Part shown: piece after piece, positions 18,328 to 61,058 of the stretch | How the letters are laid out: every line of letters starts with the position of its first letter | Position numbering within the stretch: the first letter of the stretch is position 1 | From: Monocercomonoides exilis PA203 | Taxonomy: Eukaryota; Protista; Preaxostyla | NCBI GenBank assembly: GCA_001643675.2 | Contig: LSRY02000007.1 | Coordinates: forward strand, 868,001 to 932,000 | Reading direction: 5' to 3' | DNA: 64,000 nt | Position numbers and translations under genes: made by a program | Notes under the pieces: generated by a model | Database searches by the model: none | The model's input: only the letters and a program-made list of their open reading frames with translations | What the model was told of the DNA's origin: nothing

Positions 18328-21300
18328 TTAAGATTCAAGAGCAGCTTGCTCGTCATCACTTAAAATCAGCTGCTTTCTGAGCGAATCTTCTGTGTGCTGC
18401 AATCTTCTCTTTCTCCTTCTCTTTCGAGTGTAGACAACATATACAATTATCACACAAAGAGTAACGCATGCTGCAAACATCATGACGAATGCGACCATAA
18501 AGCCTGTAACTGTTGGAGGCATTTGCTCAGCTTTTTTATCCACTTCATCAGGCAGCATATCTCTGAATATGGAATAATTTGTAATCTCTTTCTTGTCTTC
18601 AGCTCCTGCCAAACCACCAAATTGAATTCGCACCGCAATCACGGTTTTCCTGTCTGCAGTATCGATATATGATTGTTTTGGGATGCCTGCACATGAAGTG
18701 TCGTTTGAAAAAGAAACAAGTGGAAAAGTCATCGAGCTAATTTCCACACCATGCACAATGAAAAACATCTCTCCTATCATTAAGCATGGCATCAAGTTTT
18801 CACCATTAAATATCACGAGCGGTCCTTCAGCATCATTAGATTGAATTGTAGAAGACTGCTTCACAACGGTTATATTTTTCAAGATTGGGACAAATAAAGG
18901 TGCTTTACTCAAAGTTTGCACACCTGCCACCTGACAGTCCTGCCGATCAACCCACATCGATGGATTTTCTGGCGCACCATCGCTGCTTCCTTTTACGCTT
19001 TTCACCTCAACGTTCCCCTTTTGCTCACAATGAATATTATGCCGAGCAGATGGAAAGCGATTAATTACAGGGTTATTGTTGAAAAATTCACCTGTTGTGA
19101 TAACAAGCTTCCCTCCAATGACAGAAAGTCCTCCACATGTGGAATTAGCAACGGTGGGGTCTTCCATTGTTGTTGTGCAAGCTTCAAATTCCATCATCGA
19201 GTGCTTCCAGCTGCACACTTCAACTTCATCATTTGAAGATTTCTTGGTATCGCGAATGTGATTTGATTCAGTTTCGTTTGCACTAAGCAAACCAATGTCT
19301 TTTTCAAAGTTGTGTGAAGTATGTGAATCACTATCTGTATATAATTGACCCTTCACTATGCAAAACTTCCAGTTTAATACAGAATTCTTGAAATATGCTG
19401 ATGAAGCACTTGAAGATTTTGACAGGCATCGAATAATTCTAGCATCGCTAAAAGAGTAGCTAATGTCTTTGTCTTCTGAATAAATAAGAGCAGGATCAGA
19501 TATTGATTGACTACTTATGTCATGAAATATTGAATTTGAAATAGTGATTGTTTTTTCTCCTGCCTCCACTGGCATAACTTCTTGTGGCACTGTTTTTGGT
19601 TCCACTTCAATGAATGATTTCGATGCCATTGTAATATTGGAACAAGTTATATTTAATAAGTTAGCTTTTGTAATTCCTCGAAAGATTATTGCGCCTTTGA
19701 ATGACAACGCATTCATTTGTGTATTATGCAGAAGTGTCTCATCTGAATCGTTTGAGATCATATCATTTCTAAATATTGTTTCATGTGAATTAATATTAGT
19801 TGAAGGAACATTATCTGCAAATGAAAAGTTCTTTATAATCACGTCATTAAATTCAAAACTTCCTCCCTCCACGCAGATAAGCGCAAGTGCAAATGAGTTA
19901 CTAATCTTCCCTATCAATTCTGAACTAGTAATGCGAGACAATCCAATTGTAGAATGAAGAAATACTTCAAAGTTTTTAGGATCTTCAATAATAATATTTA
20001 ATGTACTCAACAAAGTATTTCCTTCATTCTCCAAAATGTAGTCCCCGCTATCGCTGTCCATACGAACTGTAACTTGCGGAACCGTTTCCAATTTACCGTT
20101 ATACATTTCTATTCCTGTAATCTGAGATTTTTCAGAGATTAAGAGATTATTTAAAATTAGTGCTTGCTGTTTTCCGCCAGTCAGTCGATTTCGACAGTAA
20201 TTGATACTTTTGCACGGATTAAGCTGTGTGCCACATGTTACAAAATCATCTCCAGCTTTTGAGATGTAAACAGTTTCATTGTTATATTCCCAGAATTGCA
20301 TAATATCCTTATCTATAGTTTCAGTATCACGTCCAAAAATCGCATTAGTCCTCTTAAAAACAAGTGGATTCAAAGAGAAATTAAATTTCGAAGGCGCAGA
20401 AATCTCTTTCAAACTTGGTCCAATAGAATAGAAATATATGTCAGATCCAAAAGCTGCTTTACATTGATCAAATTTGATTTCATTCAGCTGATATTCAAGA
20501 GAGCATCCATCTGATAAAAACATAAACAAAGCCCCACCTCTTCCGCTTTTAGAATTGGCGCTGCATGTTGTAAAAATCGAATCTGATATTGTAACCATTG
20601 CATCTTCCTCCATTCGTATGTGGCATGCACCGCCTTCACCATTATTGCTGTTTGTATCAGCAGAAGTGAAATAGCATTTTGTCAAAGAAACATGCATTCC
20701 TGTCGTTGCAGCAGCTTTCAGTGCACATCCAGTAGTAGATGTGGATACAACTTTGTTGATGGTGTAATTAGTTATGAGTAATCTCTTTGTGCGGGCTGAT
20801 TCAATAAGCGAGCAGCTCGTTAGATTAACAGAAGAAGCTGTGATATTATTTATTTGTGAAGTGACATTAATATAGTCTAATTTTATTATTGGAGATCCAT
20901 GACGAGTTGATTCAACAGAAAGTTTATCAACTTTCAAAAAGCCATTCAACACTCCTGCAAAAATAAAGTTAATTGCTACTGATGAAGAAGCAGATAATCT
21001 AACATGATTCAAGGTGAGTCCATATTCACCTTCGATAACTGAAGATAAGATAAAGTATCTGTAATCCATTTGCGTTGTCACATTAAAGTGAATATCTTTA
21101 ACAGTAAAACTATTCACTCCGACTATTAAAGCATCCTTCGGCTCCTCTGTTGTTGCATTAATAGTAATACCAGCAAGCGAAGTGGGCTTTGATGAATGTA
21201 AAGAACATTTGACAATAGAAAGAGATGAAGACAACGAGCTTTGCTCCATAATTATCAAGTGCATTTCTTTGTCCTCTTTATAAATTAACAGATGTCTTAC

Positions 21301-24300
21301 ACCGAAATAAACGGTTTGACACGGATTATTTTCCTCTCCGCATCTGTCTGTATCCTTTCCTTTCTGGCTTGCATAGATTTTCTCATTATGATAATACCAA
21401 ATTTCAAGGAGATTGATATCATCCGTATAGTCACTGCAATCTTTTGCCCAAAATCCATTCCAGCTAATATTAAACGCTTCGTCTGAAAGATGAAACTGCA
21501 TTTTAAGGACCTGCTTCTTTATCGAGTCAGCATAAACATACACATCTCCCCCGATGTGTGCAGAATTCATTTCGAAGTAAACAGAATCAAGATAAAACAA
21601 ATACTCAGCATTATCTAAACTTCCCAATATGTCTCCGCTCAATGACGTACTTTTTGGTTTAACGTTACTAATATCAATGAAAAGTGCTCCTCCTTTTCCT
21701 GCATACATGTCAGCCAAGCAAAATGTGAGCTCGCTTTTCTCAATTATTATTTCACCTCCATCTTCTTCAACTTTAGCGTTAATTCCCATTCCCTTACCTT
21801 TCTCAACAAAAGTGCCACCAATTTCACATATAGTTAAATTTTTAAATATTGTTTTATAATTTGCTGGAATGTTCAAAGAAAAAGCGGATACAGCTATATC
21901 TTCAGATAGATCACCATTTGTCATCATTTCAATGCTTCCAACATTAGTGGAATTGAAGACAACCGATGCTTTACCAACTTTGAATATTGGCCTCGTAATG
22001 TTCAGTCCACAAAAAGTCGAGTCTGAAATTTCAACTGATCCTCCTTCAATAGTCGCGAACGTCCATCTGCAATAATTAAATTCTTCCATTTTATTCTGTA
22101 CAGCAGAAACAGATATTAACTTTGTGCTCCCTCCATATATACCTATCAGATATGTGTGCTTGCATTTTGCTGGGACAACAAATGAGCAACTTTTAATTGT
22201 TGTCTCTGTAAAATCTTTCTTAGCTTCTGTTGTGCTAATTCTAATAAGTGGATCTGTTTCTGTCAGTTCATGTGATTCTTCTGCAATTACAATTGAGCTG
22301 GTATAACTTTCCGAATTGATCAGCAATCCGCTAAAGTCTGCGTCTTCGTAAAGATGACCAGTGCCTTTAATGGAAATAGTCCTGGTGGTTGCATCAGATG
22401 GAAAGTGGCTCATGACATAATCCAACGAAAGGCATGGATTGTCGTTCGATCCACAAAGAAGAGTATCTTCCCCTTTTGTTGCAACAAATAGTTTATTGCT
22501 TCGATACTCCCATAATTCTATTAAATCCTTTTCATTCGAATAACTTCCTTTTCCACTTCCCCACAAAGCATTATTGCGATTGTACATCTTTTCAGAAATA
22601 TCAAAGGCGAAATACTCATTCTTAGCACAAAGTTCCAAGGCATTATCGTTCAAAAGATAAGCATCTCTTCCGTGATATGCATCATTCTGCGTAAATGTTA
22701 TTGCACTCAAAAGGTAGTTGTAAAGAGAAGATGCCAAGAAATGAATGTATACAGCGCCACCTCTTCCTCCAACACTGCCTGATGCTTGCTTATTATTCAC
22801 GGTACATTGAGCGAAGGTTGTGCTCGCAACAGAAAATCTTCCATCTCCATCAATGCTCAAAAACAAGCATCCACCATTTGTGCCAGCGACAGTGTTTGAG
22901 GAGATCCTTGTAAAGTTGCAATTAGATATCTTCCATATGCAATTCGGTTCAATATTGGTCCCGATAAAAGGAGCAGGAATCTTTGAAGAGGTAATAATAA
23001 CATCTGAACAGTTTGATTCAGAAATTTCAAAGTGAGTTGTCATTGCACAAGAAATCAGCGAAGGGCTGATGGAAGAAGTGTCGTACAAATAATTGATGTT
23101 GACGATTTTCGTTGAAGTAATTCCTAATAAAGAAGCTTTTTCAGCCCATATGAGTGGCTGATTTGTTGTAAAGGATGTAAATGTGCATGCTTTTATTTCA
23201 ACATCTCCTGAATTTATATGCATAACAGGATATTTTATATCAATAACGGTATTTTGCAATGACTGATAATTTTGATGGGAAGAGCCATATAAATTCGATT
23301 GAGCCCCGTTAAAAATGCAATTAATGAACTTCGCAGAACCTGCTTCAGAATAAATCATGGAATATTTCAGATTATTTTCAGCTAATTTCTCGAGTAAGTC
23401 AATCTCTATGTTACTAATGCCACTATCCCCTTCAATGAGTATCAGCCCTTTTGAAGCAAGTTCTTGCGCTTCAAGTTTTATGATTAGCTTTTCTAATGGA
23501 TCGCTGCTCCCACCCATCACAGTCACATCACTCAGATTAATTTCAGTTTTGACTTCAGCTGATGAAACAATAGTCAGTTTCAGCACGCTATCATCCGACT
23601 CGCTGTTGTATAAGTGAGTGAGACCATACTCAACAGTCAGGCAAGGTCGGTTAGAACTTCCACAAAGCTTCTCATTGATATGTGGCTCGCGGCCGTCAAC
23701 ATACACATTTGAGCCAAAGTATTCCCAAAATGAAAACAGGCTGACAACTTTGCCTTCATTGTTGGCTTCACAGCCACTCAACGAGTTCTGGTGCAAGAAG
23801 TGATCCGAGTCAAAAGGGAAGCAAAACCTGCTTTCTTTTGCAGAATTTGACAAATCTTTTTGCGCAAAAAGGAACATATCGCTTCCGAATCGAGCTTTAT
23901 TATTTAAAAACGTAATACCGTCCAATAAAAATTGAGAGCCTTCAGAATTTTTCACTGCAAAATATAATGCACCTCCTCTCCCTTCGTTCTCATTCACAGA
24001 ACACGCTTTATACGATCCACCTTTCAAGTTCAGCGAACCGCCACTTTGTATCGTTGCCTTGATAAGTCCACCTGTAACCTTTCCTGTTTCAGTGTTGTGG
24101 ATTTCGCTGCTCAATGTATTGTTGATGTTTGCTATTCCGTCTGTTGGAACGCTCAAATCAAGGACACTATGAGAACCTGTATCATCGTTCTTTGCTTGGA
24201 CTTTAGAAACAGAAATATCGTTCATATCAAGAGAGTGCAATATCAATTCTTTTGATTCACATTTGAGGAAATTCAAACTTAATTTTAATTTCCTCGCAAT

Positions 24301-27300
24301 CAAATCTGTTAACTCAACTTTGTTCGTATTGCTTTCAAAATTCAAAACAACACTCGTTGAGCTCATTAAGTTTAATGCGACAGAGTTAATATTTACGTCT
24401 CCACTAGAAGCAGCAAGAATAGCAAAATCAACATGAAAATCGTCTTCATTAGCTGAAGTTCCTATTTGATTTGATGATAAGCCATCATGTGCCCAGAAAT
24501 TGGCTTGCAGAATTGGCTGAAACGACACATATCCAATACTAATCAAGGTTCCACTTGATCGAATAAGCGATTGATGTCCCACGGAAGTCGGGAGGTAAAA
24601 CTCCATTTGGGATATGCTCAAAGTTGTTTCTGTTTGAATTAAAGAAGGAATGGTAACTTCATCTTGCTCGTTCCAACTTACTGTTATTTTTGGCTGCGTA
24701 CTGCCCATTTTCTGAATGCTAACTCCATCCAACTTAATTTCACCTGAAATATCGCTCTTGTCGCAAACATACAGAGTCTTTGTATCGCCTGCCAAATTCC
24801 GAGCTGCATTCACAAGACCACGACACGGTTCGACTTCTGATCCGCAGAATGAAACATCTTCCCCTTTTTCTGAAGTGAACGCTATTTCAGCCGATCGCTT
24901 CCAAACCTTCGTAAGATCCAAATCGGTGTCTGAATTGCGTCCAAAAAGTGCATTGGCTTTGTCATATGGCGCAATTTTCACGAAATTAAAAGATGAAAGA
25001 GGGGCAGCCTCAACAAGCGACTGCGACGCAGAATCCACATTTACAAACACATCTCTTCCAACATTTGCATCACAATTAATAAAATTACAGTTATTTAATT
25101 TGAACTGAGAAGTGCTTCCTTTTTTTCGAATAAAAATGGCACCGCCACGTCCGGCATATGTACCTTTGGCTGTGCAAGCGTTGAATTTTGTATCAGTTAT
25201 TGTAAATTGTGAATAATCTTCCATCGAAAAATAAAATGCAGCACCGCAATTAGAAAGGAGTATATCTTCATTTGACATAGTGCCCAATTCAGTTTTGCCG
25301 TTAATTGATTTGCGTGCATTTGTCGGAGTTGTAATTTTCACGTTTTCAAACGAACATTCTTCAAAATCTAGTGTGTTGCTCGAAATTAGCTTGCAGGAAA
25401 AAGCAGCGCCACCCATATTTTGAGAAGGTATATCCTCTTTTCTTGTAACTGCTGAAAAAGTCACTTTTTTCGCAAGCATTTTATAAGGAGTAATAAGGTT
25501 AATGCAAGGAACATTAAGAAGGGTTAAGGAGTTAAATGCAACGTTTGTTAAAGACACAAAACCATTTTCAGCTACAATAACTGAAGAACTGAGCATATCC
25601 TCGTTTGATTTTCCATTTTTCATTGCATTTGTCAGGTCATTATGTTTCTGAACAGGAGCTTCTCCGTTAAATTCGCAATGAACAAAACTTGCACACGCTT
25701 CTTGCTGGGTCAAATAAAGAATCGTATGAATATATCCCGATACGCAATTCGGCTTTATTTTTAGTTCTTCCATCAAAAGATTGCAGCCTGAGCATTTAAT
25801 CCACCCATTCCCAGGCTCAGCATCTTCAGTCATTACTTGTTCCTCATTAGCGTTTGCTTTAACAATTGTGGGATGAATGGTAACTTTATTGAGCGATTCT
25901 CCTTTCAGATGGAACTTTGAGGAGTCATAATGATTTTGACACGAGTGCTTATTTAGATTCAAAGTCTTGGTTTCCGCGTATACACCTTCTCTAATATCAA
26001 GAACCTGCGGAGAAATAACGTACACTCTTTTAATTCCACTTTCAATTGTTGAGCAGGGGTTCTGCTCGTCTTCTCCACAAACGCTGCTTATTGATCCTCC
26101 ATTTTTGACAATAATTTTACTGTTCAACGGATTTGGTAAGAATTCATTTAACGCTAATTTTTTCGATGCATCAAACACACGCACTTGATTGCTTGTGGAA
26201 GTAGACCAGCCAAATTGCTCTAATGGAGGGATTCTTGTGCAACTTTTTGAAAATACGATATCCGTTCCTTCGGTTTCGCTGTTGCTTTCAGATTCCTTGT
26301 TATTTCCTCCATTTTCAAGAGCGTTAGCTTTTAAATAGTTTTTCAGGAAGGAACAAAACATCACCGAAAGAAATGAATCCTGTGAAATGTCATAGATCCA
26401 CATGGCGCCACCTCCGCTGCGCTGTTCCTGATCTGAAGTTGGTGATGCAAAGCATTCCTGAAAGACGCAATCGCTGAAAGTCGCAGTGAAATCAAATGAG
26501 GCATCTGGATTCGGATAGTTGAATGAATCAATACCGATTGCTCCTCCTCCGTGAACGGATCCACATTCTTCAAACGAGCATCCAGAAATTGATGCTTCCT
26601 TTGCCATGCAAATGTAAATGGCTCCCCCAGATTCTCGACAAAAATCTAAATCTTCATTTGCCTCGGTAAATTTCTTTGGATTTTGATAATGCTCGTGTAA
26701 ATTTGTTGTTCGAGAAGGAGGAGTAAGTATTTTTCCTGAAATGCACTTTTCGAAAACGCATTGAGAGACGGATGCAAGTCCAGTTGTTCTGTAAAAGCCA
26801 ATGGCACCTCCTGCTGAGAACGCGGAACAATTTTCGAATTGAACTCCCTTTAATACTATCGGATGTGATGTGTCCTTGGCAACAAAACCTCCTCCAATTC
26901 CTGCATGGCTTTCAGTCACAACAGTATCAACAGAACACCAAATGAATGAGCCATATAAAATCGTGACAGAGGCTTCATTGCAAATTTCAAGAGCTCCTCC
27001 TTCTAAGCTATCAGTCGTTCTGATATTCATGAATTGAGCTTCTTCAAATGAATGAGTTCCTTGATTGAACTCTTGGCGATAATTAAAAAACGAATATCTG
27101 TAATTTAAACATTCGTCAAATGAGCTATTAAAAACGTTGAAATGGTCTAGTCCACGATTATCCACAAAAAAGCCATAATAAGGGTTTTGGACTTTATGAA
27201 ATGAGCTTGAATCAAATAAATTGGAGCAGCATCGAGATGGTAAATAATCATCTTCTGCCCCAGAAGAAATACTTGTCATATTGTAAAAATTACATGAAAT

Positions 27301-27783
27301 AATTGAAGATGAAAGCATTTCCCCACGCGAGAGGAATGTAACAATCGCTTTTTTTGATATACTCTTGAATGTTGAATCAAAAATCGAAATCCTACTTGAA
27401 CAATCGTTCATTTCAGCAATGCCAGCAAAATTTATCATTTTTAAATCATGGATGTTTAAAGTTAAATTGTTCACATTGCAGATTCCAGAAATTCGAAACA
27501 AAGTTGAGTTCATTCTCTGATCAATATTAAACTTGCAATTACACAAACGAAACTCCGAATCGCCTAAAACATGTAAAGATGATTTGACCAAAAGCGGGTT
27601 TAAGCAAGTGTCTTCTAAATAAAAAGTAGTATTTGCCAAAAAGAACATAAAATTCATCTTTTCGTTTTGAGGGCATATATGTGTATATGAAGCGCTTTTT
27701 TCAAAGCTCCTTGGTTCCTGAGAAAATAAAGCTTCGCTTTGGCAAATGCAAACAACAAGCACAAGGCTTGCTATTGACATCAT
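18328..27783 (-). CDS. 3151-aa single-exon type I membrane surface protein with pectin-lyase-like/Pmp-like beta-helix repeats
   Basis: N-terminal signal peptide (MMSIASLVLVVCICQSEA). Many GGA[ILV] and FxxC/FxxN motifs. Six CGxxxx(x)PC module starts. C-terminal TM (GFMVAFVMMFAACVTLCVIIVYVVY) followed by RKRRRKRR and a short tail. Confidence 0.88.
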   Translation of the reverse strand: MMSIASLVLVVCICQSEALFSQEPRSFEKSASYTHICPQNEKMNFMFFLANTTFYLEDTCLNPLLVKSSLHVLGDSEFRLCNCKFNIDQRMNSTLFRISGICNVNNLTLNIHDLKMINFAGIAEMNDCSSRISIFDSTFKSISKKAIVTFLSRGEMLSSSIISCNFYNMTSISSGAEDDYLPSRCCSNLFDSSSFHKVQNPYYGFFVDNRGLDHFNVFNSSFDECLNYRYSFFNYRQEFNQGTHSFEEAQFMNIRTTDSLEGGALEICNEASVTILYGSFIWCSVDTVVTESHAGIGGGFVAKDTSHPIVLKGVQFENCSAFSAGGAIGFYRTTGLASVSQCVFEKCISGKILTPPSRTTNLHEHYQNPKKFTEANEDLDFCRESGGAIYICMAKEASISGCSFEECGSVHGGGAIGIDSFNYPNPDASFDFTATFSDCVFQECFASPTSDQEQRSGGGAMWIYDISQDSFLSVMFCSFLKNYLKANALENGGNNKESESNSETEGTDIVFSKSCTRIPPLEQFGWSTSTSNQVRVFDASKKLALNEFLPNPLNSKIIVKNGGSISSVCGEDEQNPCSTIESGIKRVYVISPQVLDIREGVYAETKTLNLNKHSCQNHYDSSKFHLKGESLNKVTIHPTIVKANANEEQVMTEDAEPGNGWIKCSGCNLLMEELKIKPNCVSGYIHTILYLTQQEACASFVHCEFNGEAPVQKHNDLTNAMKNGKSNEDMLSSSVIVAENGFVSLTNVAFNSLTLLNVPCINLITPYKMLAKKVTFSAVTRKEDIPSQNMGGAAFSCKLISSNTLDFEECSFENVKITTPTNARKSINGKTELGTMSNEDILLSNCGAAFYFSMEDYSQFTITDTKFNACTAKGTYAGRGGAIFIRKKGSTSQFKLNNCNFINCDANVGRDVFVNVDSASQSLVEAAPLSSFNFVKIAPYDKANALFGRNSDTDLDLTKVWKRSAEIAFTSEKGEDVSFCGSEVEPCRGLVNAARNLAGDTKTLYVCDKSDISGEIKLDGVSIQKMGSTQPKITVSWNEQDEVTIPSLIQTETTLSISQMEFYLPTSVGHQSLIRSSGTLISIGYVSFQPILQANFWAHDGLSSNQIGTSANEDDFHVDFAILAASSGDVNINSVALNLMSSTSVVLNFESNTNKVELTDLIARKLKLSLNFLKCESKELILHSLDMNDISVSKVQAKNDDTGSHSVLDLSVPTDGIANINNTLSSEIHNTETGKVTGGLIKATIQSGGSLNLKGGSYKACSVNENEGRGGALYFAVKNSEGSQFLLDGITFLNNKARFGSDMFLFAQKDLSNSAKESRFCFPFDSDHFLHQNSLSGCEANNEGKVVSLFSFWEYFGSNVYVDGREPHINEKLCGSSNRPCLTVEYGLTHLYNSESDDSVLKLTIVSSAEVKTEINLSDVTVMGGSSDPLEKLIIKLEAQELASKGLILIEGDSGISNIEIDLLEKLAENNLKYSMIYSEAGSAKFINCIFNGAQSNLYGSSHQNYQSLQNTVIDIKYPVMHINSGDVEIKACTFTSFTTNQPLIWAEKASLLGITSTKIVNINYLYDTSSISPSLISCAMTTHFEISESNCSDVIITSSKIPAPFIGTNIEPNCIWKISNCNFTRISSNTVAGTNGGCLFLSIDGDGRFSVASTTFAQCTVNNKQASGSVGGRGGAVYIHFLASSLYNYLLSAITFTQNDAYHGRDAYLLNDNALELCAKNEYFAFDISEKMYNRNNALWGSGKGSYSNEKDLIELWEYRSNKLFVATKGEDTLLCGSNDNPCLSLDYVMSHFPSDATTRTISIKGTGHLYEDADFSGLLINSESYTSSIVIAEESHELTETDPLIRISTTEAKKDFTETTIKSCSFVVPAKCKHTYLIGIYGGSTKLISVSAVQNKMEEFNYCRWTFATIEGGSVEISDSTFCGLNITRPIFKVGKASVVFNSTNVGSIEMMTNGDLSEDIAVSAFSLNIPANYKTIFKNLTICEIGGTFVEKGKGMGINAKVEEDGGEIIIEKSELTFCLADMYAGKGGALFIDISNVKPKSTSLSGDILGSLDNAEYLFYLDSVYFEMNSAHIGGDVYVYADSIKKQVLKMQFHLSDEAFNISWNGFWAKDCSDYTDDINLLEIWYYHNEKIYASQKGKDTDRCGEENNPCQTVYFGVRHLLIYKEDKEMHLIIMEQSSLSSSLSIVKCSLHSSKPTSLAGITINATTEEPKDALIVGVNSFTVKDIHFNVTTQMDYRYFILSSVIEGEYGLTLNHVRLSASSSVAINFIFAGVLNGFLKVDKLSVESTRHGSPIIKLDYINVTSQINNITASSVNLTSCSLIESARTKRLLITNYTINKVVSTSTTGCALKAAATTGMHVSLTKCYFTSADTNSNNGEGGACHIRMEEDAMVTISDSIFTTCSANSKSGRGGALFMFLSDGCSLEYQLNEIKFDQCKAAFGSDIYFYSIGPSLKEISAPSKFNFSLNPLVFKRTNAIFGRDTETIDKDIMQFWEYNNETVYISKAGDDFVTCGTQLNPCKSINYCRNRLTGGKQQALILNNLLISEKSQITGIEMYNGKLETVPQVTVRMDSDSGDYILENEGNTLLSTLNIIIEDPKNFEVFLHSTIGLSRITSSELIGKISNSFALALICVEGGSFEFNDVIIKNFSFADNVPSTNINSHETIFRNDMISNDSDETLLHNTQMNALSFKGAIIFRGITKANLLNITCSNITMASKSFIEVEPKTVPQEVMPVEAGEKTITISNSIFHDISSQSISDPALIYSEDKDISYSFSDARIIRCLSKSSSASSAYFKNSVLNWKFCIVKGQLYTDSDSHTSHNFEKDIGLLSANETESNHIRDTKKSSNDEVEVCSWKHSMMEFEACTTTMEDPTVANSTCGGLSVIGGKLVITTGEFFNNNPVINRFPSARHNIHCEQKGNVEVKSVKGSSDGAPENPSMWVDRQDCQVAGVQTLSKAPLFVPILKNITVVKQSSTIQSNDAEGPLVIFNGENLMPCLMIGEMFFIVHGVEISSMTFPLVSFSNDTSCAGIPKQSYIDTADRKTVIAVRIQFGGLAGAEDKKEITNYSIFRDMLPDEVDKKAEQMPPTVTGFMVAFVMMFAACVTLCVIIVYVVYTRKRRRKRRLQHTEDSLRKQLILSDDEQAALES

Positions 27784-44187: not shown

Positions 44188-45965
44188 TCAGCCGCATCTA
44201 GTGGGGCACTGATCGCAGCACCCAGAGAGTGAGTCTTCGCACCCTCTGTTGCACACACGCCGGTCCAGGTCGCAAGCAAGCACCGCCTGCTGCCCGACTG
44301 CCTGTGCTGCGCAGAGGTCGTACTTCACAGTGCACTCGTTGAGGCAGTCCTGGTGCTGCTCTCTGCACATCGCCGAGCAGGCGCCCGCGGTGTAGCTGCC
44401 GGCAAAGGCCACCGTCTCGGACAGGCGCGCCTCGCACGTCTGGCGGCACAGCCTGCGCTGCTGGTAGCACGCGACCTCGCAGGTCATCGAGCACTCGCAG
44501 CCGTTCAGACACGTCTGGAACTCGTCCTCGCAGTTGGAAATGCATACACCGTAGTCGAACTCTGCGTTCTGGAACGGCGTCGCACCGACTGGGCACTCCG
44601 CCAGGCACTGTGTGTTCAGCTCGTCGCAGGTGAGCTGGCACTGCCTCCGGTCTGACTGGCACTCCAGTTCGCAGTCCGTTGGGAGCTGCGACCTCCGCTG
44701 CCGGCAGCGGTTGATGCACTGATTTGTATCGCTGGAAAGAGAAGGGAAGGAAAGGGAAGGGAAGGAGAGGAAATGAGTGTGATGTTGATGGAAAGAAGGA
44801 AAGATGATAAATGAAAAGAAGGATGTGGCGAAATATTTATGTATTGGATTTGAAGAGAAAATGAAATGAAAATAATTGTTTAAAAAAGAGAGAGAGGAAG
44901 GAGATGGGAAAACATACCGATCGCATTGGTCCAAGCAAATTTGGAATGTTGCTCCACACATGACAAGACAAACATCTGCGGTGTTTGCGTCGCAATCCAA
45001 GCCACAACTAACAGATGCTAATCGGCACTTCGATGAGAAAATTTCAAAAAAAAATGTGAGAAAGAAAATGCAATGGAAACAAATTTTTGAATGTTAAATG
45101 AGTACTTGTTCTCTGCAAGTTCTTAGCAACTTTTTGCATTCAGCTCGATCAACAAGCGGAGGTTGTCCAACAGGAGGGGTTACGCAAGTTCTGTTTTTGA
45201 AAGGAAAAATACGAGTTGAAAATCTAAAATGTAATTTAATTCCAGAGCAAACAAATAATCGTTGTTGCACATGTTCAGACAATTAGATTCATCTTGCTAA
45301 ATGAATATTTTCATATGTTTAGAGATAAAAGCCTCATTCATGCAAAAGAAACAAACTAGACAAGCTGCTGCACAAAGTTCAAATGTTGGTATCGCGCATT
45401 GCGCAACGCAAGCAGTAAAGCCTTGAGTGCATGTGCTCGTTTGATCTTCTTTTCGTTCTTGGCTATCATATTTAAAGAATATCAAGTTGAGGAGGAAAAT
45501 AATCATACAATAAATCATACCAATGCATAAGCCCTTGCGGAGTTGAAGCCTTCAATTGGCATCTTTTGAAATCAATGTCTGCAGTATCGATGCATTTTTC
45601 TAATTGAAGAGAGCAAACGTCTTCACAAGAGCATGAAGAAACGCTTGCCATGGCTTGGGATGCAGCAAATTGCATTCCACAGTTAACTTCACATTCTCTT
45701 CTCGTTTCTCTGCAAGCTGAAATGCATCCCAAGTCAGATGCAGGACTGCAGCAAAGTTATGTGAAAAAAATGATTATTGAGCGCATACCAAGTTTCAAGG
45801 CATGTTAAAAACGAATTCTCACAATTTAATGCACATCCAGAAATTCCAGCTGATGAAAGAGGTATTCCTTGGCTAAATACTAAAATATGATTGAAAAATG
45901 TTTAATTAAGGTTAAATCAGCATACCAAAAGAAGTTAGGATGCAGCACAAAAAATAATAAAGCAT
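44188..45965 (-). CDS. 414-aa secreted Cys-rich protein with C-x3-C-x6 periodicity. Exons 45965-45926, 45879-45789, 45745-45521, 45462-45357, 45296-45253, 45190-45106, 45027-44918, 44731-44188
   Basis: Seven GT..AG introns; exons total 1245 nt, giving an open frame ending in TGA. Signal-like N-terminus MLYYFLCCILTSFVFS. About 62 Cys, with the Cys register preserved across splice junctions. Confidence 0.85.
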
Positions 45966-50268: not shown

Positions 50269-50352
50269 TATACGAAACGAAAAAATTAACGATTATCTAA
50301 AAAATCACCCATTTATGCATTGTGCATATAGAACCTGACATGTAACAAAATA

Positions 50353-50758
50353 TTGTTAGTGTAAATAATGGTGGACACTTTCAATAACTTTGGACAGTCG
50401 CATAATCTCAACAACAGTTGACAGTTGGATTTGGACAATTAACACAATTATTCCTTCAATGAATACAAACTTATATATCAAACAAAAATGAAACAATTTG
50501 CTCCCAAGAATAAAGAAAAACACATTTTTTATTTTCGGAGAAACTCGGAGAAATAAGATTCTCCGAATTTCTCCGAAAACTAAAATTATTTTTTATAATA
50601 TTTTATTGTGTTGGATGGGTGATTGAAACAATGCATATTTGTTTGCATTTAATGAAAGAATTATTAGGTTTATTGTCAAAAAGCAACAATCAATGGTTTC
50701 TGACAAAATGCCACTGTCCACAGTTATTGAAAGTGTCCACCATTATTAACACTAACTA
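50353..50758. mobile_element. 406-bp palindromic MITE with ~50-bp TIRs and a conserved central hairpin, TA-flanked
   Basis: Ends T[T/A]GTTAGTGT[A/T]AATAATGGTGGACACTTTCAATAACT[T/G]TGGACAGT[C/G]GCAT (4 mismatches in 51). Central inverted motif at 50532-50579. TA at 50351-52 and 50759-60. Confidence 0.88.
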
Positions 50759-52127
50759 TACCAGAAAAGATCGTTTTCTCAATAACAGCAAGAAGTGAAT
50801 TTCAGAAAAATTTCCTTCTAATATATCTCATCAAAACAAACTCATTTGATATACGGGACTTTAAAACCAGCTTCATTTGAACTCAAAAAATTATTATTAA
50901 AATCTCGTAGGAATAGAGTTTTGAGTTTCTCCAAGATTTCATTAATTGCTAAGGAAAGTGTTCTTTAAATATGAAAGTGAAATTCTCGCAGCCCAACAAA
51001 GTCGGTTAAGTTTATATATATATAGAGGATATATATCACACTTTCTTCAATTGTACAAATTGAGAAAACAATCTTGTCCGGAATTTTGAATAGAATCTGG
51101 TATTTTATACACAATCAACACAATCTTTTATTCGAAATTTGTAAACTTTTATTTTAAAACTTATAAAATCGAGTATTTTGATTAAAATTATTTTTTTTGC
51201 AAAAATTTGGTTTTAAGCTGAATGACGGAAAGTGATGAAAATGTTGTATTTAGTCAATATTCAAATATAGACTGGAAATTGAATCTGCAACATTACAGAT
51301 AGTGCAAAAAATACCGGACATCGCAAAAAATACCGGACAAAAAACTTTAAAATGGTATGATCAATTCCATGATATCTGTGATTAAAGTTCAATTTCTTAT
51401 ATTTCATTGATTTTGGAAATTTTTATGCACTTTCTGCAAAAAAGCCAAGAAAATCGTGACAAATTTTTTTATGGGATGATAAAAATATGTTGCTTGCGAA
51501 AAATGAAGCAGGGTGTTAATTGAAGGAGAAAGTGATGGTTGAAAATGCAGATTTCCAATGATTAAAATATTGGAACGAACTTTTTCAATAGAAACTTACA
51601 GAAAGAAGCAGTTCCGAGTTCAACAACAGTAACAATAATTATAAGTTTGTTTCGAGTTGAAAGATGAATGATGTTTGATGTTCATCGACGAGAATGAATC
51701 ATAACCACAAATTGAAGCGAAAAAAAATGAATGAGCCTCCTCTGTGATGATGTGGGACATCTTCTTATTGATTCCTTTAATTATCCTTAACGAAGGAATA
51801 TGCATTTCCATGTTGAATAAATATTGGAATAGAAAAATGTTTGTTAATTGTTATTTTGTTTGGAGTGGCTATTCTTATTTGAAAAAAATATTTCTTTTGA
51901 TAATCAATTAAAAACAATTAAACAATTAAAGAATTTGACGAATACAGTAATGTTTTCTTGTTAATTTGAAGAAGTTTCACATTTGGTTCTTCCTTTGAAT
52001 TTTTGTATTGACATATTCAGAACATAAACAAAAAATTTTCTGCCTTTTTTCATCATTTCATAGAATTTCAAAAATAAACTTAATTCGTTGTGGACGTTTG
52101 ATGTCTTATTTGTACAAGAAGTGAGTA

Positions 52128-52128
<1 letters not shown>

Positions 52129-52165
<37 letters not shown>

Positions 52166-52201
52166 AAAAAAAAAGGAAAAAAAAAAAGAGAGAGAGAGAG
52201 A
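52129..52201 (+). repeat. poly(A)/(GA)n purine tract inside the TIR element
   Basis: A-runs interrupted by GG, followed by (GA)n. Confidence 0.85.
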
Positions 52202-52469
52202 CAATTTTTGAGTTTGGATAGACAACAATTTGACAAACTTATTTTGTTCAATGAAAAGATAAAAACAATCACTTAAATAATAACAAATTATTTCATTTCT
52301 CTTTATCTGGAAACATTATTCATTTATTTTGAAAATATAAAGAAAAAGTGTATAAAAATAACACAAAAAATTGAACTTAACTGTTATTGAAAACCTTTAT
52401 CCACCTTTATATCATTTCCTCAATGTTTTCTTCTATTCTTCTATTTAATTAATTTCATTCAAAGATTAA

Positions 52470-53503
52470 TACCCGCATCTCCTGCCCTCTCCCTAGCCAT
52501 CGCCAATAACATCGCTAACATCGAATGAAAACAGCTTAATAGTTTGACTACCACCAATGGAGGGTATCCAGTTCGCTTCATCAGTACGTGCCAACAAATT
52601 TTCTGTGAGCAGCACCACCTTTTTCAACTTGTGTGTGAACGAGGACACATATTTCAGAATTAGAGGCAGAACACTCATGATCGAGGTTAACCAAAACTCG
52701 GCAGGGTCACAATCCTCCTTTTCCATCGCCAATGTCGTGTTTTCAGCCAACAAGATTAGTTTCAGAAAAGATGAGTATTTTGCGTGTGAGCCCCTTGTCG
52801 CTTTTGTGAAAGAGCCCTTGTTTGCCTTCATGAGAAGCTTCATTCAGAAAGACAACTCGATTGTTGCACATTACAGATCAGAGGCATTTGGCAACTGTGA
52901 TGTCGACTTGCTTATGTTCTTCGATGGTTTCTTTTCTGATTCGGTGTATGTGGATGGAACACCAAGAGTGAAAGAGATGTGTTGTGGAACATTGAAGGCT
53001 CCTGTAAAAATGTGAATTTTGAAATGGGACATTTGAAGAGAACACTGAATATTAAAGAGGAAATTATTCTGTGTCCAAAATCGTCTTCAACAGGATGTTT
53101 GGATATGGGAGGAATGAATGTGAAGGCAAAAACTGTGACAATTGAAGAGATTGAATGTCAAACAGAAGTGAGTGGCTCTGAAGAATGCAATATGAAATCA
53201 TCATCACTGACAGAAATGGAGTTCGTTGGGATTGTTATTCCATCGAGTTTTAACAGAACAATCTCAGCAGTGATTGAATCGAGCACTCAAAAGGGAGAGT
53301 TGCACCAGAAGAATCAAGCGACAAGTGTTATTGAAGGAAAGAGGCGTTCAACTGAATTTCCTTTTGTCAAATCAATAGTGAAGATGGTTGAACTGAACAC
53401 TGTCACAAACTCAGATGCGAAATCGACGTTCTCACTGTTAACATTTTTCTCTCGGGAAATGAATATAAAATGGATAGCGAAGAAAAATAAAAAACTGAGC
53501 TAA
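52470..53503 (+). pseudogene. Frameshifted internal fragment of the beta-helix surface-protein family
   Basis: FSVSSTTF..FSANK..DVDLLMFFDGFFSDSVYVDG..CCGTLKAP followed (after a frameshift near 53000) by CKNVNFEMGHL. This parallels FSVASTTF..FTQND and YFGSNVYVDG..LCGSSNRPCLTVEYGLTHL of 18328-27783. No signal peptide or TM. Confidence 0.78.
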
Positions 53504-55744
53504 AAAATTAACAACAAAATGATTGTGAATTGATCGGGATGTAGTTGAATGTCTCTCAAAATTTCTTGAAGATCATCTGTTTGCAGCCGTTCGAAACTTA
53601 ATTTTTCTTTTCTTCAATTCAACATCAACATAATTGTTAACTCTTTCTTTATTTGAATCATTGCATAATCAGAAAAACTCTTTTAAAAAACGATTTCAAC
53701 AAATATTTTATTATAGAACATGACATTTAATTAATGGTCATCTTGATCGAAATAATGAAAGATTTCATGATCTTTTTTAACTTTCATTCTTTTACGTGTC
53801 AGATGTTGAAAAAAATGAACTTATGAAATGAATATTTGATGAATTGATTGTTTTGTTATGAATGTTGTTTCTATTTATCAATTATGATTCTAAAATATTT
53901 TTTTTTCATTAGCTTGAAGACAATAACTTCAGATTTATTTGGATTCCATATTTTGATCGTTCTTTTTCATTAACCATATTCAAACATATATGTTTGTTCG
54001 TTGAATTCAATTTTATTTCTTTTTTTTATTGTTGTTTTCGACTGTTGATCTTGTACGAATTTTACATAATTGCAAAGTTTTTTATCATTGATAAAAAGTT
54101 GTACAGCTCTATTTACTGGTTTTACAGTTTTCAAAGAAACAATTCTTATTAATTTTGTATTTTATTTCAAAAACAGGAAAGTGATTATTTAGATATTATT
54201 TGTGTTGATTTTGTTGTAAATATTGTTATTATGAGGAAGAGACTTGTTGATATTCATTTCTTGTTGTATTTTATTTGCATTGTGAATAACAGTTTTTTTG
54301 CTTTGTATTTGATATCATTTCGTTTTATGAATTATTTAAATACGTTTAATCCTCGAATGCGAATGTTTATTTGTTATTCAATGATTTTTAACCACCAAGC
54401 ACATATTTTAAATAATCGTGAAAGCAAAATTTACATTGTGTAAAAACTACAAAAAAATCATTAAAGATTTAATGGGTTCATAATCAAGAGTTATTGAAAT
54501 AATTAAAAAAAGCTTATTTATTAAATTGCATAATGAATTATGCGCATGTTCATTTGAAAAAAAAATAAAAATTTCTACAAACCCTTTATTGTTAATGTTG
54601 TCCGGTATTTTTTGCGATGTCCGGTATTTTTTGCACAATCTATATTATTTGTCGAAAAACTTAAAAAAATCTTCATTTTCTTAAAAAAATCATCATCATG
54701 GAAATCGGATTATCTTTGAATTATTTCAAATCACATAGTCAGATTTCACATAATGCAATCATGATACTTTATTTTCATTTTCATATATTCAGAAGATCAA
54801 TAAAAACAAATGAAAATTTATGAAAGTGCTTTTATCAATTTACTCAATTGTGTAAATAAATGTTTTCTTCATCTTGTTTTGATGTGAATAATATATTTGG
54901 ATAATACAATGTGTAATCCAACATATGTGTGATTTTTTATGGGATCATTAAAATCGACTCTTCAAATATGATAGAAGGAATTGGAAAAAAAAAGTTATTT
55001 ATTGAAATATAAATACTTTTTAAATAATAATTGTGTATTTTTTTTTTTGAAAAACTCAACGACTAAAATTTTGTCCCACAAAAAATCAAAATTGATCATT
55101 CTGTTCCCATCATACATTTTTGTTAATTCCACATATGTATTTATTTCACATATCAGCGAATATAAAGTTTCAATAAGATCGATATTACATAAACTATTAA
55201 CTAACTTTTCATTTTTGATTTTAAAAAATAATCTATTAGTTGTTATTTGTGTCAAACTATTATTTTCATAAATATTGACCTTTTTTATTTCATTAATTTG
55301 AATAGACATTTTGATTTTTTGAATAATTATAAACATTTCAACATTTCAATGAGTTGAAAAAACGAAAAGGTGAAAAATCGTTAATCCTGTATAATTTTTT
55401 GAAAGTTAATAGTTATGAAAATATAGAAGCAATGATACATATGAATGAAAAACTATTATCAAATATTCGAACAAATTAATTGATTACATATATTTTATTT
55501 AAAAATTAATATTATTTGCAATTAAAACATCAAAATGCTTGAAATAAAAAATTCAAAATGATGTTTATCATTTTTTGATCAAATCATGAATTGCATCTTT
55601 TTGTTGAGGTTATTTTTCTTTTTCTTTTTTGTTCATCTTTTTCTAATTACACTCATTTTTTTCAAAGAATTTCAAAAAAGGAGCAAATGCTTCACTAATC
55701 TTGATAATGCATAATCTTTTTTTGAAAATTATTTTGTAATATGC

Positions 55745-58700
55745 ATGATAGAGAGCAGAAGAAGAAGAGGAAGAAGAGGAAGAAGAGGAAGAAGAGGAAG
55801 AAGAGGAAGAAGAAAGAGAAGGAGAAGGCGAAGGTGAAGGCGAAGCAATAGAAGAAGAGAGGTTGAAGTTTGAGGATTGAAAGATGAGAGAGGAAAGGTG
55901 GTTAAATTGAGGCAGCCAACTGTGGTGAAGTGGAGGGCAGCGAAGGTGCAGTGAAAGAAAGAAAAATAGAAAGTGAAAGTGAAAGTGTGAAAGATTGAGA
56001 AGGAGGAGAAGACACAGAGAAAGAAGGAATTTGTCGAGTGGCTGTAGGAGATAAAGGGGAAAGCGAGGGAGATGTAGAAGGATATTTGCTTCCACTGATT
56101 CCGTTACTGAAAATGTTATTATTGGAGTTGTTGTGGCTTGAAGAAGGTGGAATTACAGTCTTTACCGAAGGAACAGTCGGATAAGCGCGAGAAAGAAGCG
56201 CGCCGAAGTTGCTGAGTGAAGCAAGTTCAGGATGTGAATGGAAAAAAACAGAAGATAGAGGAAGAAGCAGATGATGAAGCAGAATGAGACGAGGAAGAAA
56301 AATGTGAATGAATCGGAGGCAAAAGTTGCAGATGAGGTGGCTGAGAAAGACGAGGAGTGGGAGAAAAAGGGTGAATGTCTGAAGACAATGGAAGATGTGA
56401 AGGATAAAGCTGAGGGGAGCGAGAATGAGATGAGCGGAAAGGAGGTGGAGAATGAAAGGTGCAGGAAAAAGGAGCATTGGATAATGCAGCAGATGAATAA
56501 GAAACAACTGTGGCAGTTTGGAATTGATTATGAGGAAGAGCAAACGAAGGAATAAATGAAGAAGATTGATGGGAAGGAGACGGACGCAAAGTGGAAGAAG
56601 AAGAAGAAGAAGAAGAACCAGAACCAGAAGCAGAAGCAGAGGAAGTGACAGCCGAAGAAGAAGCATTCGACGATGATTCCGAGCGATCAGCAGGGTTGCC
56701 AAAGGGATCAGAAGAGACAGACAAGCTGTTTTGCACTGAATGTTGACTAGCCGCGCCTGCAAGAGATGTCTTTCGAGGCATTTCAGATTCATAAAACAGC
56801 TTCTGGCTGGACGAGGCGTAGTCGTAGTTATAAGACAAGCTGTGAGATGTGATACGCTCAGAGAAGTTGCTGGAGGCTGAAAGATTCGCACTGGAGCGCG
56901 AATAACCTGATCCACTTCTACTTCCACTGCTATCACCACCACCACCACCACCTCTTCCTATTCTCTCGTTTTTCAAGATCTCATTTGTGTAGTGTGCATA
57001 AATAGTTGAGTGTCAATCGTAGCAGTCTATTAAGCGCTTCAATGCAGTCGTAGATTCCTCAATGAGGGGCGCAGACAAAGTTAGAGCTACCATCTTCTGC
57101 TGATGGATGATGCTCATAAAGAAACGAAGCTGGTAAATGAAATGAGACGAGGCAGCTGTTGCTGTGGAGTGGGTGTCGCAGAAGAAAGACGAAGACGAAG
57201 AAGAAGAAGAAGAAGAGAAAGAGTCAGATGAAGATGAAGATGAATTTGACTGTGGAGGGATCACTTTCAGATGTCTGGCTGCTGGTGGTGGTGATGCTGG
57301 GAGAGCGGGTGATGGCTGGAGAATGCGAAGAAGCCAGCTGTGAAGGAGCTGTTGCTGCCGCCACTGCTGCTGCTGATGATGCTGATATTGAGACTGATGC
57401 TGTATCGGACAGCTGCTTCGCAGACGATGTACTTTCCAGGTGCAGCACAGTTCCTGCATCGATTACGAAGCTTTTCTATCTGATGGTATCCACCTCGTGT
57501 TCTCTCTCCAGCTCTGGGATCAGCCTCAGCGTTGACATTCTGTGTCTTTCTGCCATTGGGTTTGCAAATGAGTCACTTTTGATGGAGTACGTGTGGTCGA
57601 ATGAAGAATTGACGATGAATGTGAGCGGGTCCGGGTGTCTGGAGAGTGGAATGTGGTTCTTTCTGATCTCGCGGATGACATAGTCCCTCAGAAACAGCGT
57701 CTTCGTCTGCAGGTTGAAGCGGTTGGTGAGTACATACACACAACACGTGAACATCGCATCCCCCAGCATTGTGCGCATCTGATGATTGAGCGAAGATAAG
57801 TCAGCAAAAAGGCTCTCAAGAAGCTTGTTCAGAGAAAAAGACAGCTCTTCTGCACGAATGAGCATCGTCTTTCCCCTCTGAACCGCCTCTTCCGTCGCAT
57901 ACTTGCTCTTTGCGATGGTTGCGATGTGCCTCCGGATCTGCGCCCTTTCGTTCTCCATCTGCGCAATCAGATCAGCATACTTCTCCCTCCTGCTCTCTTT
58001 GATCACAAGCGTATGCGACAGCTCATACTGCCTCCTATCCACCTCGTCAAACGTTCCTGAGTGGATCACCACAAAGCACAGGTTGCTCAACCGCTCCACA
58101 TACACGTTGCGTGGAACAGATGCACGGAACGTGGTGGTGATGGTGGGGACGACAGGTTGAAGTGTATCCATCGACTGCTTCACAGTGCCTATTAGCAGCT
58201 GTTCCTCCATTGACGGCTGCCCAGAGGACTCTAAATGAAACATCTCCTCGATCCTCTCCAGTTCTGCGCTCAGAACATCCATCTGCCTCTGTGTTGTTTC
58301 AATCGTCCTTCTGATCAACGAATCTCCCTGTTCAAAGAGATCAATCGCATTCAAGTTCTGCAGTGAAGTCTGCGTCTGGGACATGCGCTACTGGAGGAGG
58401 TTTGTGTGTGTCTGGAGATGCTCAATGATCAAAATTGTCGACTTACACGACACAATCTGCTGTTGCATCGCCCGGATGCTGTGCATCAACGCCTTGCAGT
58501 AGTAGTCCACAGACTCCACAAACTCTGAGTGTGAATAGTTCTCTTTGAAGAATAAGCCAGATATCGTGTCTCTCCCTGTGAACCCCTACATCATGCTCTA
58601 CGAACTGTGTGTCTGTGACAAGTTCACTGCTTGTCGGTAGATGTTTGCCAGCGCATTCACAATCGCCTGCCTGATCGATTTCGTCTTTGCACACTGAACT

Positions 58701-59710
58701 TGTGCAGAATCAGGCATTGACCCAGAAGAAGAGAGGTGATCAGGAACATTTATCTGCTCAGTCACACTTGAAAACGGAAAAGTTTGCGCAAATGAAGATA
58801 GAAGCGGAGAAGAGGCAGGTGAGACAGTTGTGCCATACCCAACGCCACCATTTCCTCCTCCTCCGCTGCTGCCACTGCAACTTATGCTGCTGCTGCCTTT
58901 TTCGCTGTCTGTGACATTTGCCTGTGCAGATGCTGAAGTTGCAAGTGGGCGCATCACATCCTCCTGAACAAGTGTGGGGATGATCATCGAGAAAAACGGG
59001 CTGAGCAAGTTCTACGAAATCTGCGTGAGGATCTCCTGGTTCATCTGCTGTGTGTAGATCGCATTCGCTTTGCGTCTGAATAGCGACAGCTTGCTGTACA
59101 TGCGCGTGAAGTCTTCCATGTTGATGTTGATGACCAGCCTTGTTGTCTTGTTCATCCGTTCAACCAATGTGTCTATATCTGTCCCATAAACAGTATCCAT
59201 CCCTTTCTTCTGCAAGATCCACGCTATCCTTTGTAAAAGATACAACGTGCAGTCATGAGAGTCCACTAATTGGAATTCTTTTGCTTGAGCGTAAGAAATC
59301 GGCTCAATTTTCTGGAAAAGCAGACTACGCTGTGGCTGCTCCTCGCAGAAGAACATGTTCAGCAATAATATACAGTGCTGGGTCAGTTCTGACGTGTTGC
59401 TGAAGGAAACAACTAGAAAGCCTTCTAAATTGAGTGAATAGACAGCTAAGTGTGGGCGAAAAGAGATAAGGGCACGAGATGGAGCTATTTGTGTTTGTGG
59501 GGTGCAGTGGTTGTTGAGGGCCCTAAGCGATTTCTGTGATTGGGCGAGCTTTTGTTGTGCTGATTGGTCATCATAATAAGAAGAAGTGGAAGCAACAGAA
59601 GCTGAAGAAGAAGAAGAAGAAAGAAGAGGAAGAAGGAGAAGGAGAAGGAGAAGGAGAAGGAGAAGAAGAAGGAAAAGGAGAAGGAGAAGGAGAAGGAGAA
59701 GAAACCACAT
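55745..59710 (-). pseudogene. Decayed internal fragment of a divergent dynein heavy chain-like gene (AAA4 end, stalk, entry to AAA5) with Ser-rich insertions
   Basis: ORFs 59012, 58598, 57476 and 57224 lie in one frame separated by TAGs. LVERMNKTTRLVININ..QEILTQIS resembles the AAA4 C-terminus. It is followed by coiled coils, then RAEELSFSL..MLGDAMFTCCVYVLTNRFN..KNHIPLS..PLTFI, resembling the dynein post-stalk RAxxLxxxL..LxGDxLLxxAFxxYxGxF..IP motif. Frameshifts occur downstream. Family call is from memory. Confidence 0.6.
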
Positions 59711-59849
59711 GATTTGAAAAAATTCCGTTTGAAATATATTTTCACTGGGAATGAAGCTCAACACAAAAAATGCTGTTTGTTTGAATGGAAAAATTATTTT
59801 AAAAATGCAAAAAAAAGAAAAAAAAAGTTTTGCATTGATAATTAAAATT

Positions 59850-60500
59850 CCTCAAAAGAACAAACCTGCCATCCATATCGCAACTGCAGAAGATTGTTCA
59901 ACCACTGACGCTGTCAATCTCCTTTTCCATTGTTTCCCTGTTCTCCTTTCTCCATCATCCTTTTCCCCCCATAAATATCCTGCTTTCAATGTTGTCATCC
60001 AATTTTTTTCCTGAAAAAAATATCTCCGAATTCTATTCTTTCCAAGAGCTGTCCAATTGTTGGCACACTTCTTCAATTTCCCCTCTCTTCCAAATACTTT
60101 GAAATTGAATTTATTTTCATCCCCTCTCCCAATTGAATACAAAAAATTGCAATTCACATCTGCTGATTGTCTCTCGGCATAGCTCTCTTCTTATGATCTT
60201 CTCAGAAAAGCAAAAGAATGGTCATTTATATAATTTATCAGACACTTGCACTCTGAGAAGGCCACTGATAGAAACATCAAAAAATAAACAAGAACCATTA
60301 AAAAAGCAAACTGTAAAACATTTTCTTTCGACAATCAAATTGCTGCATTTCCTTCCCAGATGCTTTTCTTAAAAATCATCTTGCCTAATTCCATCATCAA
60401 TTCCCGCCGTCACTGACCTTGTAACTGAGAAAAATAATATTTTCTATTCCGCAGAAAATATCCATTTTCTCTTATCTTCTCCGACTCATAAACTTACACG
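59850..60500 (-). pseudogene. Possible degraded coding fragment, unidentified
   Basis: Higher GC and purine-rich minus strand with broken short frames; no motif recognised. Confidence 0.25.
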
Positions 60501-61058
60501 GAAAAAAGATAATTGAATAATCAAATTTACCACAACATTTTTTCAATCACAATTTTTTTTAAATGTCATCGATTGATTGCATGTTTTCAAGTTTTTCAAC
60601 GATCTCTCTTCATATTTTCAAATATATTTTTTTAAATGAAAATATAAAACAACAAAAAAAATTACTCATGAAAGATCAACGATGCAACGATTTTATGATC
60701 TCATAAAAAATCACACATATGAAGTTAATTTATCAGAAAATTATAACATTTCAATGATGTTAATTTTTTTTCAAAAAATGTAAATTTTTTAAGTTTTTCG
60801 ACAAATAATAATGTTGCAGATTCAATTTCCAGTCTGTATTTGAATATTGACTAAATACAACATTTTCATCACTTTCCGTCATTCAGCTTAAAACCAAATT
60901 TTTGCAAAAAAAAATAATTTTTATCAAAATACTCGATTTTATAAGTTTTAAAATAAAAGTTTACCAATTTCGAATAAAAAACCGTGCATCGAATGAAAAT
61001 CAATAAATGAGAATATTATTTAAAAGCTAATGATACTGTGAAATAATGGATGAACATA

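Follow-up and report, generated by a model that had tools for sequence, protein, structure and literature searches.

A pogo-type transposon of Monocercomonoides exilis carrying a receptor-gene fragment that probably descends from an old capture

The 64,000-nt stretch of DNA analysed here (the window; Monocercomonoides exilis PA203, assembly GCA_001643675.2, contig LSRY02000007.1, positions 868,001–932,000 of the forward strand) contains a 3347-bp element at 51296–54642 that is bounded by terminal inverted repeats (TIRs) and carries an internal fragment of a giant receptor-kinase-like gene. We conclude that this is probably a non-autonomous pogo element, whose cargo goes back to an old capture in an ancestor and has since been patched from host paralogs. 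An earlier reading of the window (the original prediction) had proposed a Pack-Tc1/mariner-like system in a metamonad-like host. The host is indeed a metamonad, M. exilis, and the element is a TA-targeting, Pack-type member of the ITm group, but a DD34E/D transposase, expected between the same TIRs, was not what we found there: five intact copies encode a pogo-type DD35D enzyme with a DDE_1 domain instead.

The predicted 45-bp TIRs with a TA on both sides are present as described. The left TIR (51296–51340, plus strand), which begins with CAG, and the right TIR (54598–54642, minus strand), whose terminal base differs to give TAG instead of CAG, are complementary at 43 of 45 positions, and the flanking TA dinucleotides lie at 51294–51295 and 54643–54644. 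Each TIR contains two 17-nt direct repeats spaced 19 nt apart (51304–51320 and 51323–51339 in the left one), and a 19-nt TIR pattern is found four times in the window, where 0.01 occurrences would be expected. Between the TIRs, sequence comparison separates an AT-rich left arm (51341–52472) with a poly(A)/GA run at ~52129–52200, the cargo (52473–53450, plus strand), which has faded out by ~53550, and an AT-rich right arm of ~1.13 kb (53451–54597). As predicted, the element interior lacks transposase similarity in both tblastn and nhmmer searches. A decayed transposase was considered for the left arm and rejected, tblastn and nhmmer giving it no support; the right arm has no match to donor genes, and the idea that it is a decayed extension of the donor was likewise rejected, nhmmer giving no hit.

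The flanks of the element match the minus strand of the window at 60979–60809 (97.7%) and 60810–60748 (86%), joined by a single TA at 60809–60810, and the target duplication is therefore TA. The uninterrupted paralogous site that had been predicted is thus real, but it is neither an allelic nor a segmental empty site: it is the sister arm of an unrelated palindromic miniature inverted-repeat transposable element (MITE) of ~715 bp that the element has split. The outer part of the left arm of this MITE lies at 51126–51293 (plus strand) and continues at 54645–~54921, and the opposite arm, which holds the single TA, lies at 60722–60979 (minus strand). A 245-bp sequence around the empty site has at least 40 genomic matches, mostly in inverted pairs spanning ~715 bp, and the host MITE, after removal of the element and of a second insert at 54922–60721, measures 725 bp and aligns end to end with three intact copies at 70–72%. 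The sister arm is still valid evidence for the TA duplication.

The TIRs belong to a family dispersed through the M. exilis genome (82.3 Mb in 101 contigs), and the genome-wide TIR search that had been suggested proved productive. The 38-nt TIR core, which the left TIR of the window copy contains unchanged and which is common to many family ends, has 121 genomic matches at up to three mismatches, whereas a control pattern has none, and the ends could be paired into MITEs, non-autonomous copies and autonomous copies. The census of copies was drawn from paired ends, with unpaired TIR ends and 21 unlisted TIR matches falling outside it. Most of the TIR ends examined belong to cargo-free MITEs of ~396 bp with TA flanks. 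At least eight non-autonomous copies of 3.3–3.7 kb were found, named here by contig (C69, the window copy, C12, C58, two from C1, C38, C6 and the degenerate C23), together with five autonomous elements of 5.1–6.1 kb (C27, two from C5, C91 and C63) that end in the same TIRs, are flanked by TA and contain an intact open reading frame (ORF) of 632–648 aa. The TA/TA duplication is present in 11 of the 12 long copies examined. Three near-identical pairs occupy distinct sites with different flanks (C5/C91, 98.8%; C12/C58, 98.6%; C1/C38, 94.6%), which shows that these copies moved together with their cargo. The closest siblings of the window copy, by comparison, are ~70% identical over the whole length.

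All long copies, autonomous ones included, have a homologous right arm of nearly constant length (z 12–25 against shuffles). The left arm is more variable: that of the window copy is homologous only to those of the C12, C58 and C1b copies (60–69%), and among the non-autonomous copies (window, L002, L062–L064, L072) two left-arm types cannot be aligned with each other (z ≤ 3.3). These two types are nearly equal in length (~1.17 kb), have a similar short motif at the cargo junction and enter the cargo at nearly the same 5′ donor position. The ~396-bp MITEs (L032, L034, L039 and others) have the same 45-bp TIR as the long elements and a symmetrical subterminal sequence unlike either long-element end, and hence are not simple internal deletions of the long copies examined. 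In several long copies (L003, at its left end, L067 and L068) one TIR is shortened by one 19-nt repeat unit, and several members contain a nested repeat of ~260 bp (L063, element positions 1998–2253, L069, L070 and L071), varying in position and orientation, which is probably a small MITE of another family.

The transposase ORF of the autonomous copies contains a DDE_1 domain (PF03184, E 4.7e-20, above the gathering score), with a D199/D317/D353 triad whose spacing of 35 residues (DD35D) is kept in all five intact copies. In its N-terminal DNA-binding region, which in pogo transposases is of the CENP-B_N, HTH_Tnp_Tc5 or HTH_psq type, no Pfam family exceeds threshold, the one hit being HTH_32 (E 0.015, below the cut-off); distant homologues carry PF05225, PF03221 and PF04218. 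Members of the pogo superfamily are recognised by a DDE_1 domain, a DD29–59D triad (DD35D in Fot/Fot-like and Passer), a TA or TAA/TAAA duplication and short TIRs (PMC7386202), and here we find DDE_1, DD35D, a TA duplication and a 45-bp TIR; the DD34E or DD34D signature of Tc1/mariner sensu stricto is replaced by DD35D with DDE_1. Because the cognate transposase is of the DD35D/DDE_1 type, we assign the family to pogo (ITm group) and not to Tc1/mariner proper, an assignment made by domain and triad. The window element also has the makeup of a Pack-TYPE or Pack-TIR element, as it is bounded by TIRs, lacks a transposase and contains host coding sequence, with 27 intact paralogous frames outside elements and several copies, at distinct target sites, that moved with their cargo. 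The parent of the segment at 52470–53503, which had been flagged for a search, was found as a gene family and not as a single locus, and all cargo found in the incomplete census derives from that one family.

At least 37 host paralogs align with the cargo (52473–~53450), at 73–77% nucleotide identity. We examined 27 host loci, chosen by similarity to the window cargo, all of which are long open frames whose matches lie more than 1.5 kb from any TIR; the idea that the donor genes are themselves cargo of giant elements of this pogo family was rejected on this ground. Full donor proteins are MONOS proteins of ~2100–2300 aa, most of them with PF07714, and a transmembrane-like segment is present in 36 of 40; the five donor upstream regions examined encode a hydrophobic, signal-like N-terminus. 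The donor ectodomain is built of modules of ~370 aa, with atlas features that point to DUF1565, Chlam_PMP and Beta_helix clusters, and the cargo amounts to about one module and does not include the donor gene start. Pfam and PDB sequence searches with the donor module gave no matches; an alignment-based structural model of it matches right-handed beta-helices (best Z 11.1, root-mean-square deviation 3.3, 152 aligned residues) and is confident in its C-terminal half only, so that the module is predicted to be a right-handed beta-helix. The original label of ~1 kb of beta-helix surface protein is accordingly fair with regard to the fold, but the donor is a receptor-kinase subfamily with a transmembrane helix and a degenerate kinase-like tail, not a gene of the window. 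The candidate in the window, an intact gene at 18328–27783 (minus strand) whose 3151-aa product is a short-tailed type I membrane protein without any match to kinases, is a distant relative of the donor family and was rejected as the donor at only 22% amino acid identity.

These features identify the donor as the expanded beta-helix, transmembrane and kinase-like receptor family reported as tyrosine-kinase-like in M. exilis, which is the largest in the genome, with 332 predicted members (PMC6759080), and overlaps unclassified repeats (PMC8767320). The kinase tails of the two donors scanned match only the C-terminal ~95 positions of PF07714, and HRD and DFG motifs are absent in the five donors checked (P0010–P0012, P0018, P0020); the so-called tyrosine kinase tails look like pseudokinases.

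The arrangement of donor pieces is shared across the family. In the 6-kb autonomous copies the transposase is followed by a more N-terminal donor segment, an AT-rich gap of ~1 kb, most of the segment carried by the window copy, and the right arm. Decayed donor sequence was considered for the gap, whose flanking donor diagonals differ by only 100–160 nt, but no similarity to the donor was detected in it. The C27/C7 type has only the more N-terminal donor segment and lacks the window-copy segment; in all other long copies examined the shared segment stands at the same distance from the right end. Cargo ends at the same donor position across copies, while its 5′ extents differ, and at both ends it grades into degenerate donor-like sequence, without a duplication of its own. 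Since every long copy examined, including the autonomous ones, carries donor pieces, the window copy appears to have inherited its cargo from an old capture in the family, and not to have performed the capture itself.

Divergence along the cargo shows that it decays neutrally. The 5′ third of the window cargo differs from the host consensus at 22/22/24% of codon positions 1/2/3, compared to 6/5/10% among hosts, and the 3′ third at 20/20/29%, compared to 8/7/15%; the window copy also has a GC-to-AT bias, frameshifts and stops. An assembly error as the cause of the frameshift near 53003–53012 was rejected, as an Illumina RNA contig matches 52909–53222 without gaps. Decay is also uneven along the cargo in most copies. 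At host-invariant sites the divergence of the window copy runs 25/11/14/5/16% (p 1e-4), that of C12 is 4–6% and then 21% (p 2e-8), and C1/C38 have a 1–2% piece, taken from a shifted donor position (register), beside a 19–21% piece (p < 1e-12). The positions of young and old tracts vary from copy to copy, which speaks against a fixed constraint. In tree tests, monophyly of the element cargos is rejected for the 5′ part (p-AU, approximately unbiased test, 0.002) and the middle part (p-AU 0.03) and is not rejected for the old 3′ part (p-AU 0.36). Further, the non-autonomous C6 and the autonomous C63 have a 95% tract in common despite otherwise distant sequences. The simplest reading is that the cargo was captured once, long ago, and has since been overwritten again and again by sequence of host paralogs and other element copies.

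Several observations weigh against this reading. No donor was found above ~96–99% for any tract, as sampling of the 27 host loci was guided by their similarity to the window cargo; the AU tests lose strength through long branches; single-capture support is modest, with 123 shared derived states against 85 expected and non-independent pairs; the two unalignable left-arm types would also be explained by independent captures; and transposition is deduced from sequence only.

In the scenario we favour, an ancestor of the family would have picked up an internal stretch of a giant beta-helix receptor-kinase-like gene, probably via template switching during gap repair, and the window element would owe its mobility to the 640-aa transposase, acting in trans, of its 5.1–6.1-kb autonomous relatives, with which it shares its TIRs and the TA duplication. 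The cargo rides as a passenger; each round of transposition would keep the TIRs intact, while stretches of the mosaic cargo would at times be overwritten by ectopic gene conversion or gap repair, from other element copies and from varied paralogs, because many paralogs exist in the host. Both 38-nt TIR cores of the window copy match the family pattern exactly, which would have a probability of ~4e-8 if the TIRs had decayed by 20% in place. From TIRs this intact in a copy whose nearest sibling is only ~70% identical, we infer that the lineage is old and the insertion recent, the window copy representing a recent insertion of an old lineage into an arm of an unrelated MITE.

RNA contigs from four runs of one study, all unstranded, were compared with the region 52215–54900. 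Exact matches cover 52384–52794, 52909–53222 and 53310–53466 at a depth of 3–7, those of three runs starting at 52384–52397, and no RNA contig lies over 53475–54900. No splice joints were seen in the contigs placed on this region, and a splice acceptor at the 5′ junction of the cargo was rejected, as contigs cross the junction unspliced. At two spots there are short contigs of greater depth, which probably derive from host paralogs. Together, the contigs suggest low-level transcription of the cargo, with DNA carry-over possible.

The pattern could instead reflect several independent captures, in which different TIR derivatives each took pieces, overlapping in extent, from one very abundant gene family. 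The unalignable left arms, the differing 5′ extents of the cargo and the rejection of cargo monophyly for its 5′ and middle parts are all in keeping with this, as is the standing of the donor family as the largest of the genome (PMC6759080). We nevertheless consider it rather unlikely, because all copies have a homologous right arm of constant length and end their cargo at the same donor position, both left-arm types resemble each other in their short junction motif and begin the cargo at almost the same 5′ donor position, and for the old 3′ cargo a single clade is not rejected. Secondary insertion of the fragment into a resident element, as an independent mobile unit or a retrocopy, might be suspected from the poly(A) run ~270 bp upstream of the cargo and from the predominance of cargo-free MITEs among the TIR copies examined; the run, however, lies upstream and not downstream of the sense strand, the cargo passes at both ends into degenerate donor-like sequence and is not flanked by a duplication, and no long copy without donor sequence was found. 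The original prediction had reasoned that a secondary insertion would leave the other copies cargo-free and give the fragment its own boundaries, but the long copies examined carry cargo at the same place, without such boundaries. This explanation is largely refuted and very improbable.

Selection could also have kept the cargo, which would be transcribed and act as a regulatory RNA, encode a short secreted product or provide a silent cassette from which the receptor family is diversified. Exact RNA contigs on the cargo but not on the right arm, those of three runs beginning at 52384–52397, the 328-codon open frame of the C12/C58 copies, a cargo of about one ectodomain module, and the persistence of cargo and a ~3.3-kb size across copies 30–45% diverged would all fit such a role. 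Against it stand the flat divergence across codon positions, the frameshifts and stops, an RNA contig that matches the frameshifted region gap-free, the low depth of the unstranded contigs of a single study with possible DNA carry-over, the coincidence of open tracts with young ones, and the C27/C7 type and MITEs, which do without the window-copy segment or any cargo; we regard selection as unlikely. A bolder version, to which we give similarly little credence, is that the TIR elements form a mobile archive of receptor ectodomain modules, which exchange sequence in both directions with expressed receptor-kinase genes by gene conversion, and that the cargo is kept for this reason. If true, such an archive would diversify the cell surface, like silent cassettes in antigenic variation. 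No case of the envisaged shuffling, with modules moved into host genes, was seen in the incomplete census, nor any splice joint in the RNA contigs; the demonstrable traffic runs from host to element. Taken alone, the window copy is an ordinary passenger.

Gene capture by ITm elements is not new, since Pack-Mariner and Pack-Tigger1 are known. Like the Pack-Mariner elements of rice and maize (Gisby and Catoni 2022, PMC8903248; reviewed in PMC12187468), the family described here comprises non-autonomous multicopy TIR elements with host coding fragments, whose TIRs are common to MITEs and autonomous elements. Unlike them, it belongs to the pogo superfamily, resides in a metamonad, carries cargo in transposase-coding copies as well, which the scheme of PMC8903248 would class as autonomous, and takes all cargo found from one gene family, patched from paralogs, whereas the term gene conversion is absent from PMC8903248. 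Among the animal Pack-TIRs (Tan et al. 2021, PMC8277862), Pack-Tigger1 of gibbons is likewise a pogo-group (Tigger) element with captured sequence, and multicopy cases spread by transposition to distinct target sites; capture by template switching has been described for animal Pack-TIRs (PMC8277862). These are mostly single-copy, young and near their parent, in contrast to the old, multicopy, dispersed and mosaic elements here, which include coding copies. DDE_1, DD35D, the TA duplication and a TIR of the 40–60-bp class are shared with pogo Fot/Fot-like and Passer elements (Gao et al. 2020, PMC7386202). Autonomous copies here reach 6.0–6.1 kb, however, exceeding the reported pogo range of 1.2–5.2 kb (PMC7386202) because of their cargo.

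The available text of PMC6759080 and PMC8767320, which treat the M. exilis tyrosine-kinase-like family represented here by MONOS donors with PF07714, does not describe transposon-borne fragments of receptor-kinase genes, and our literature searches yielded no description of such elements for oxymonads. Compared to known Pack elements, cargo in intact autonomous copies and cargo refreshed by exchange with a host family, and so kept recognisable, are variant features, neither of which we found in the Pack literature consulted. With this family, gene capture of the Pack type extends to the pogo elements of a metamonad. As their cargo has been exchanged repeatedly with the largest gene family of the host, its identity to a host gene does not date the capture. 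Cargo-bearing elements may explain some of the overlap of kinase genes with unclassified repeats noted in PMC8767320, and the family lends itself to testing, as it offers five intact transposases and pairs of near-identical copies.

The second insert in the host MITE (54922–60721) is 5.8 kb long and bounded by 31-bp TIRs (94%); its ends are multicopy, its interior has at least five relatives at 84–93%, and it is probably another cargo-bearing TIR element. Within it, at 57226–59800 (minus strand), a frame of ~860 codons is broken by stop codons at five points, in every case TAG and never TAA or TGA, which would reflect CAG-to-TAG decay or readthrough; its similarity to dynein heavy chain is weak and non-significant (best E 0.084), and all three matches are dyneins. 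P0048, a gene model of 764 aa, joins a Harbinger-type DDE_Tnp_4 transposase to ~390 aa of the same receptor ectodomain as in the donors and is either a gene-model fusion or another capture. Elsewhere in the window lie a cysteine-rich ORF without a Pfam match (44188–45000, minus strand), a gene for an SNF2 helicase with a RING finger (5940–14594, minus strand), and further palindromic or inverted-arm elements at 16724–17791 (96% self-complementary), 15361–16256 (77%) and 50351–50760 (70%).

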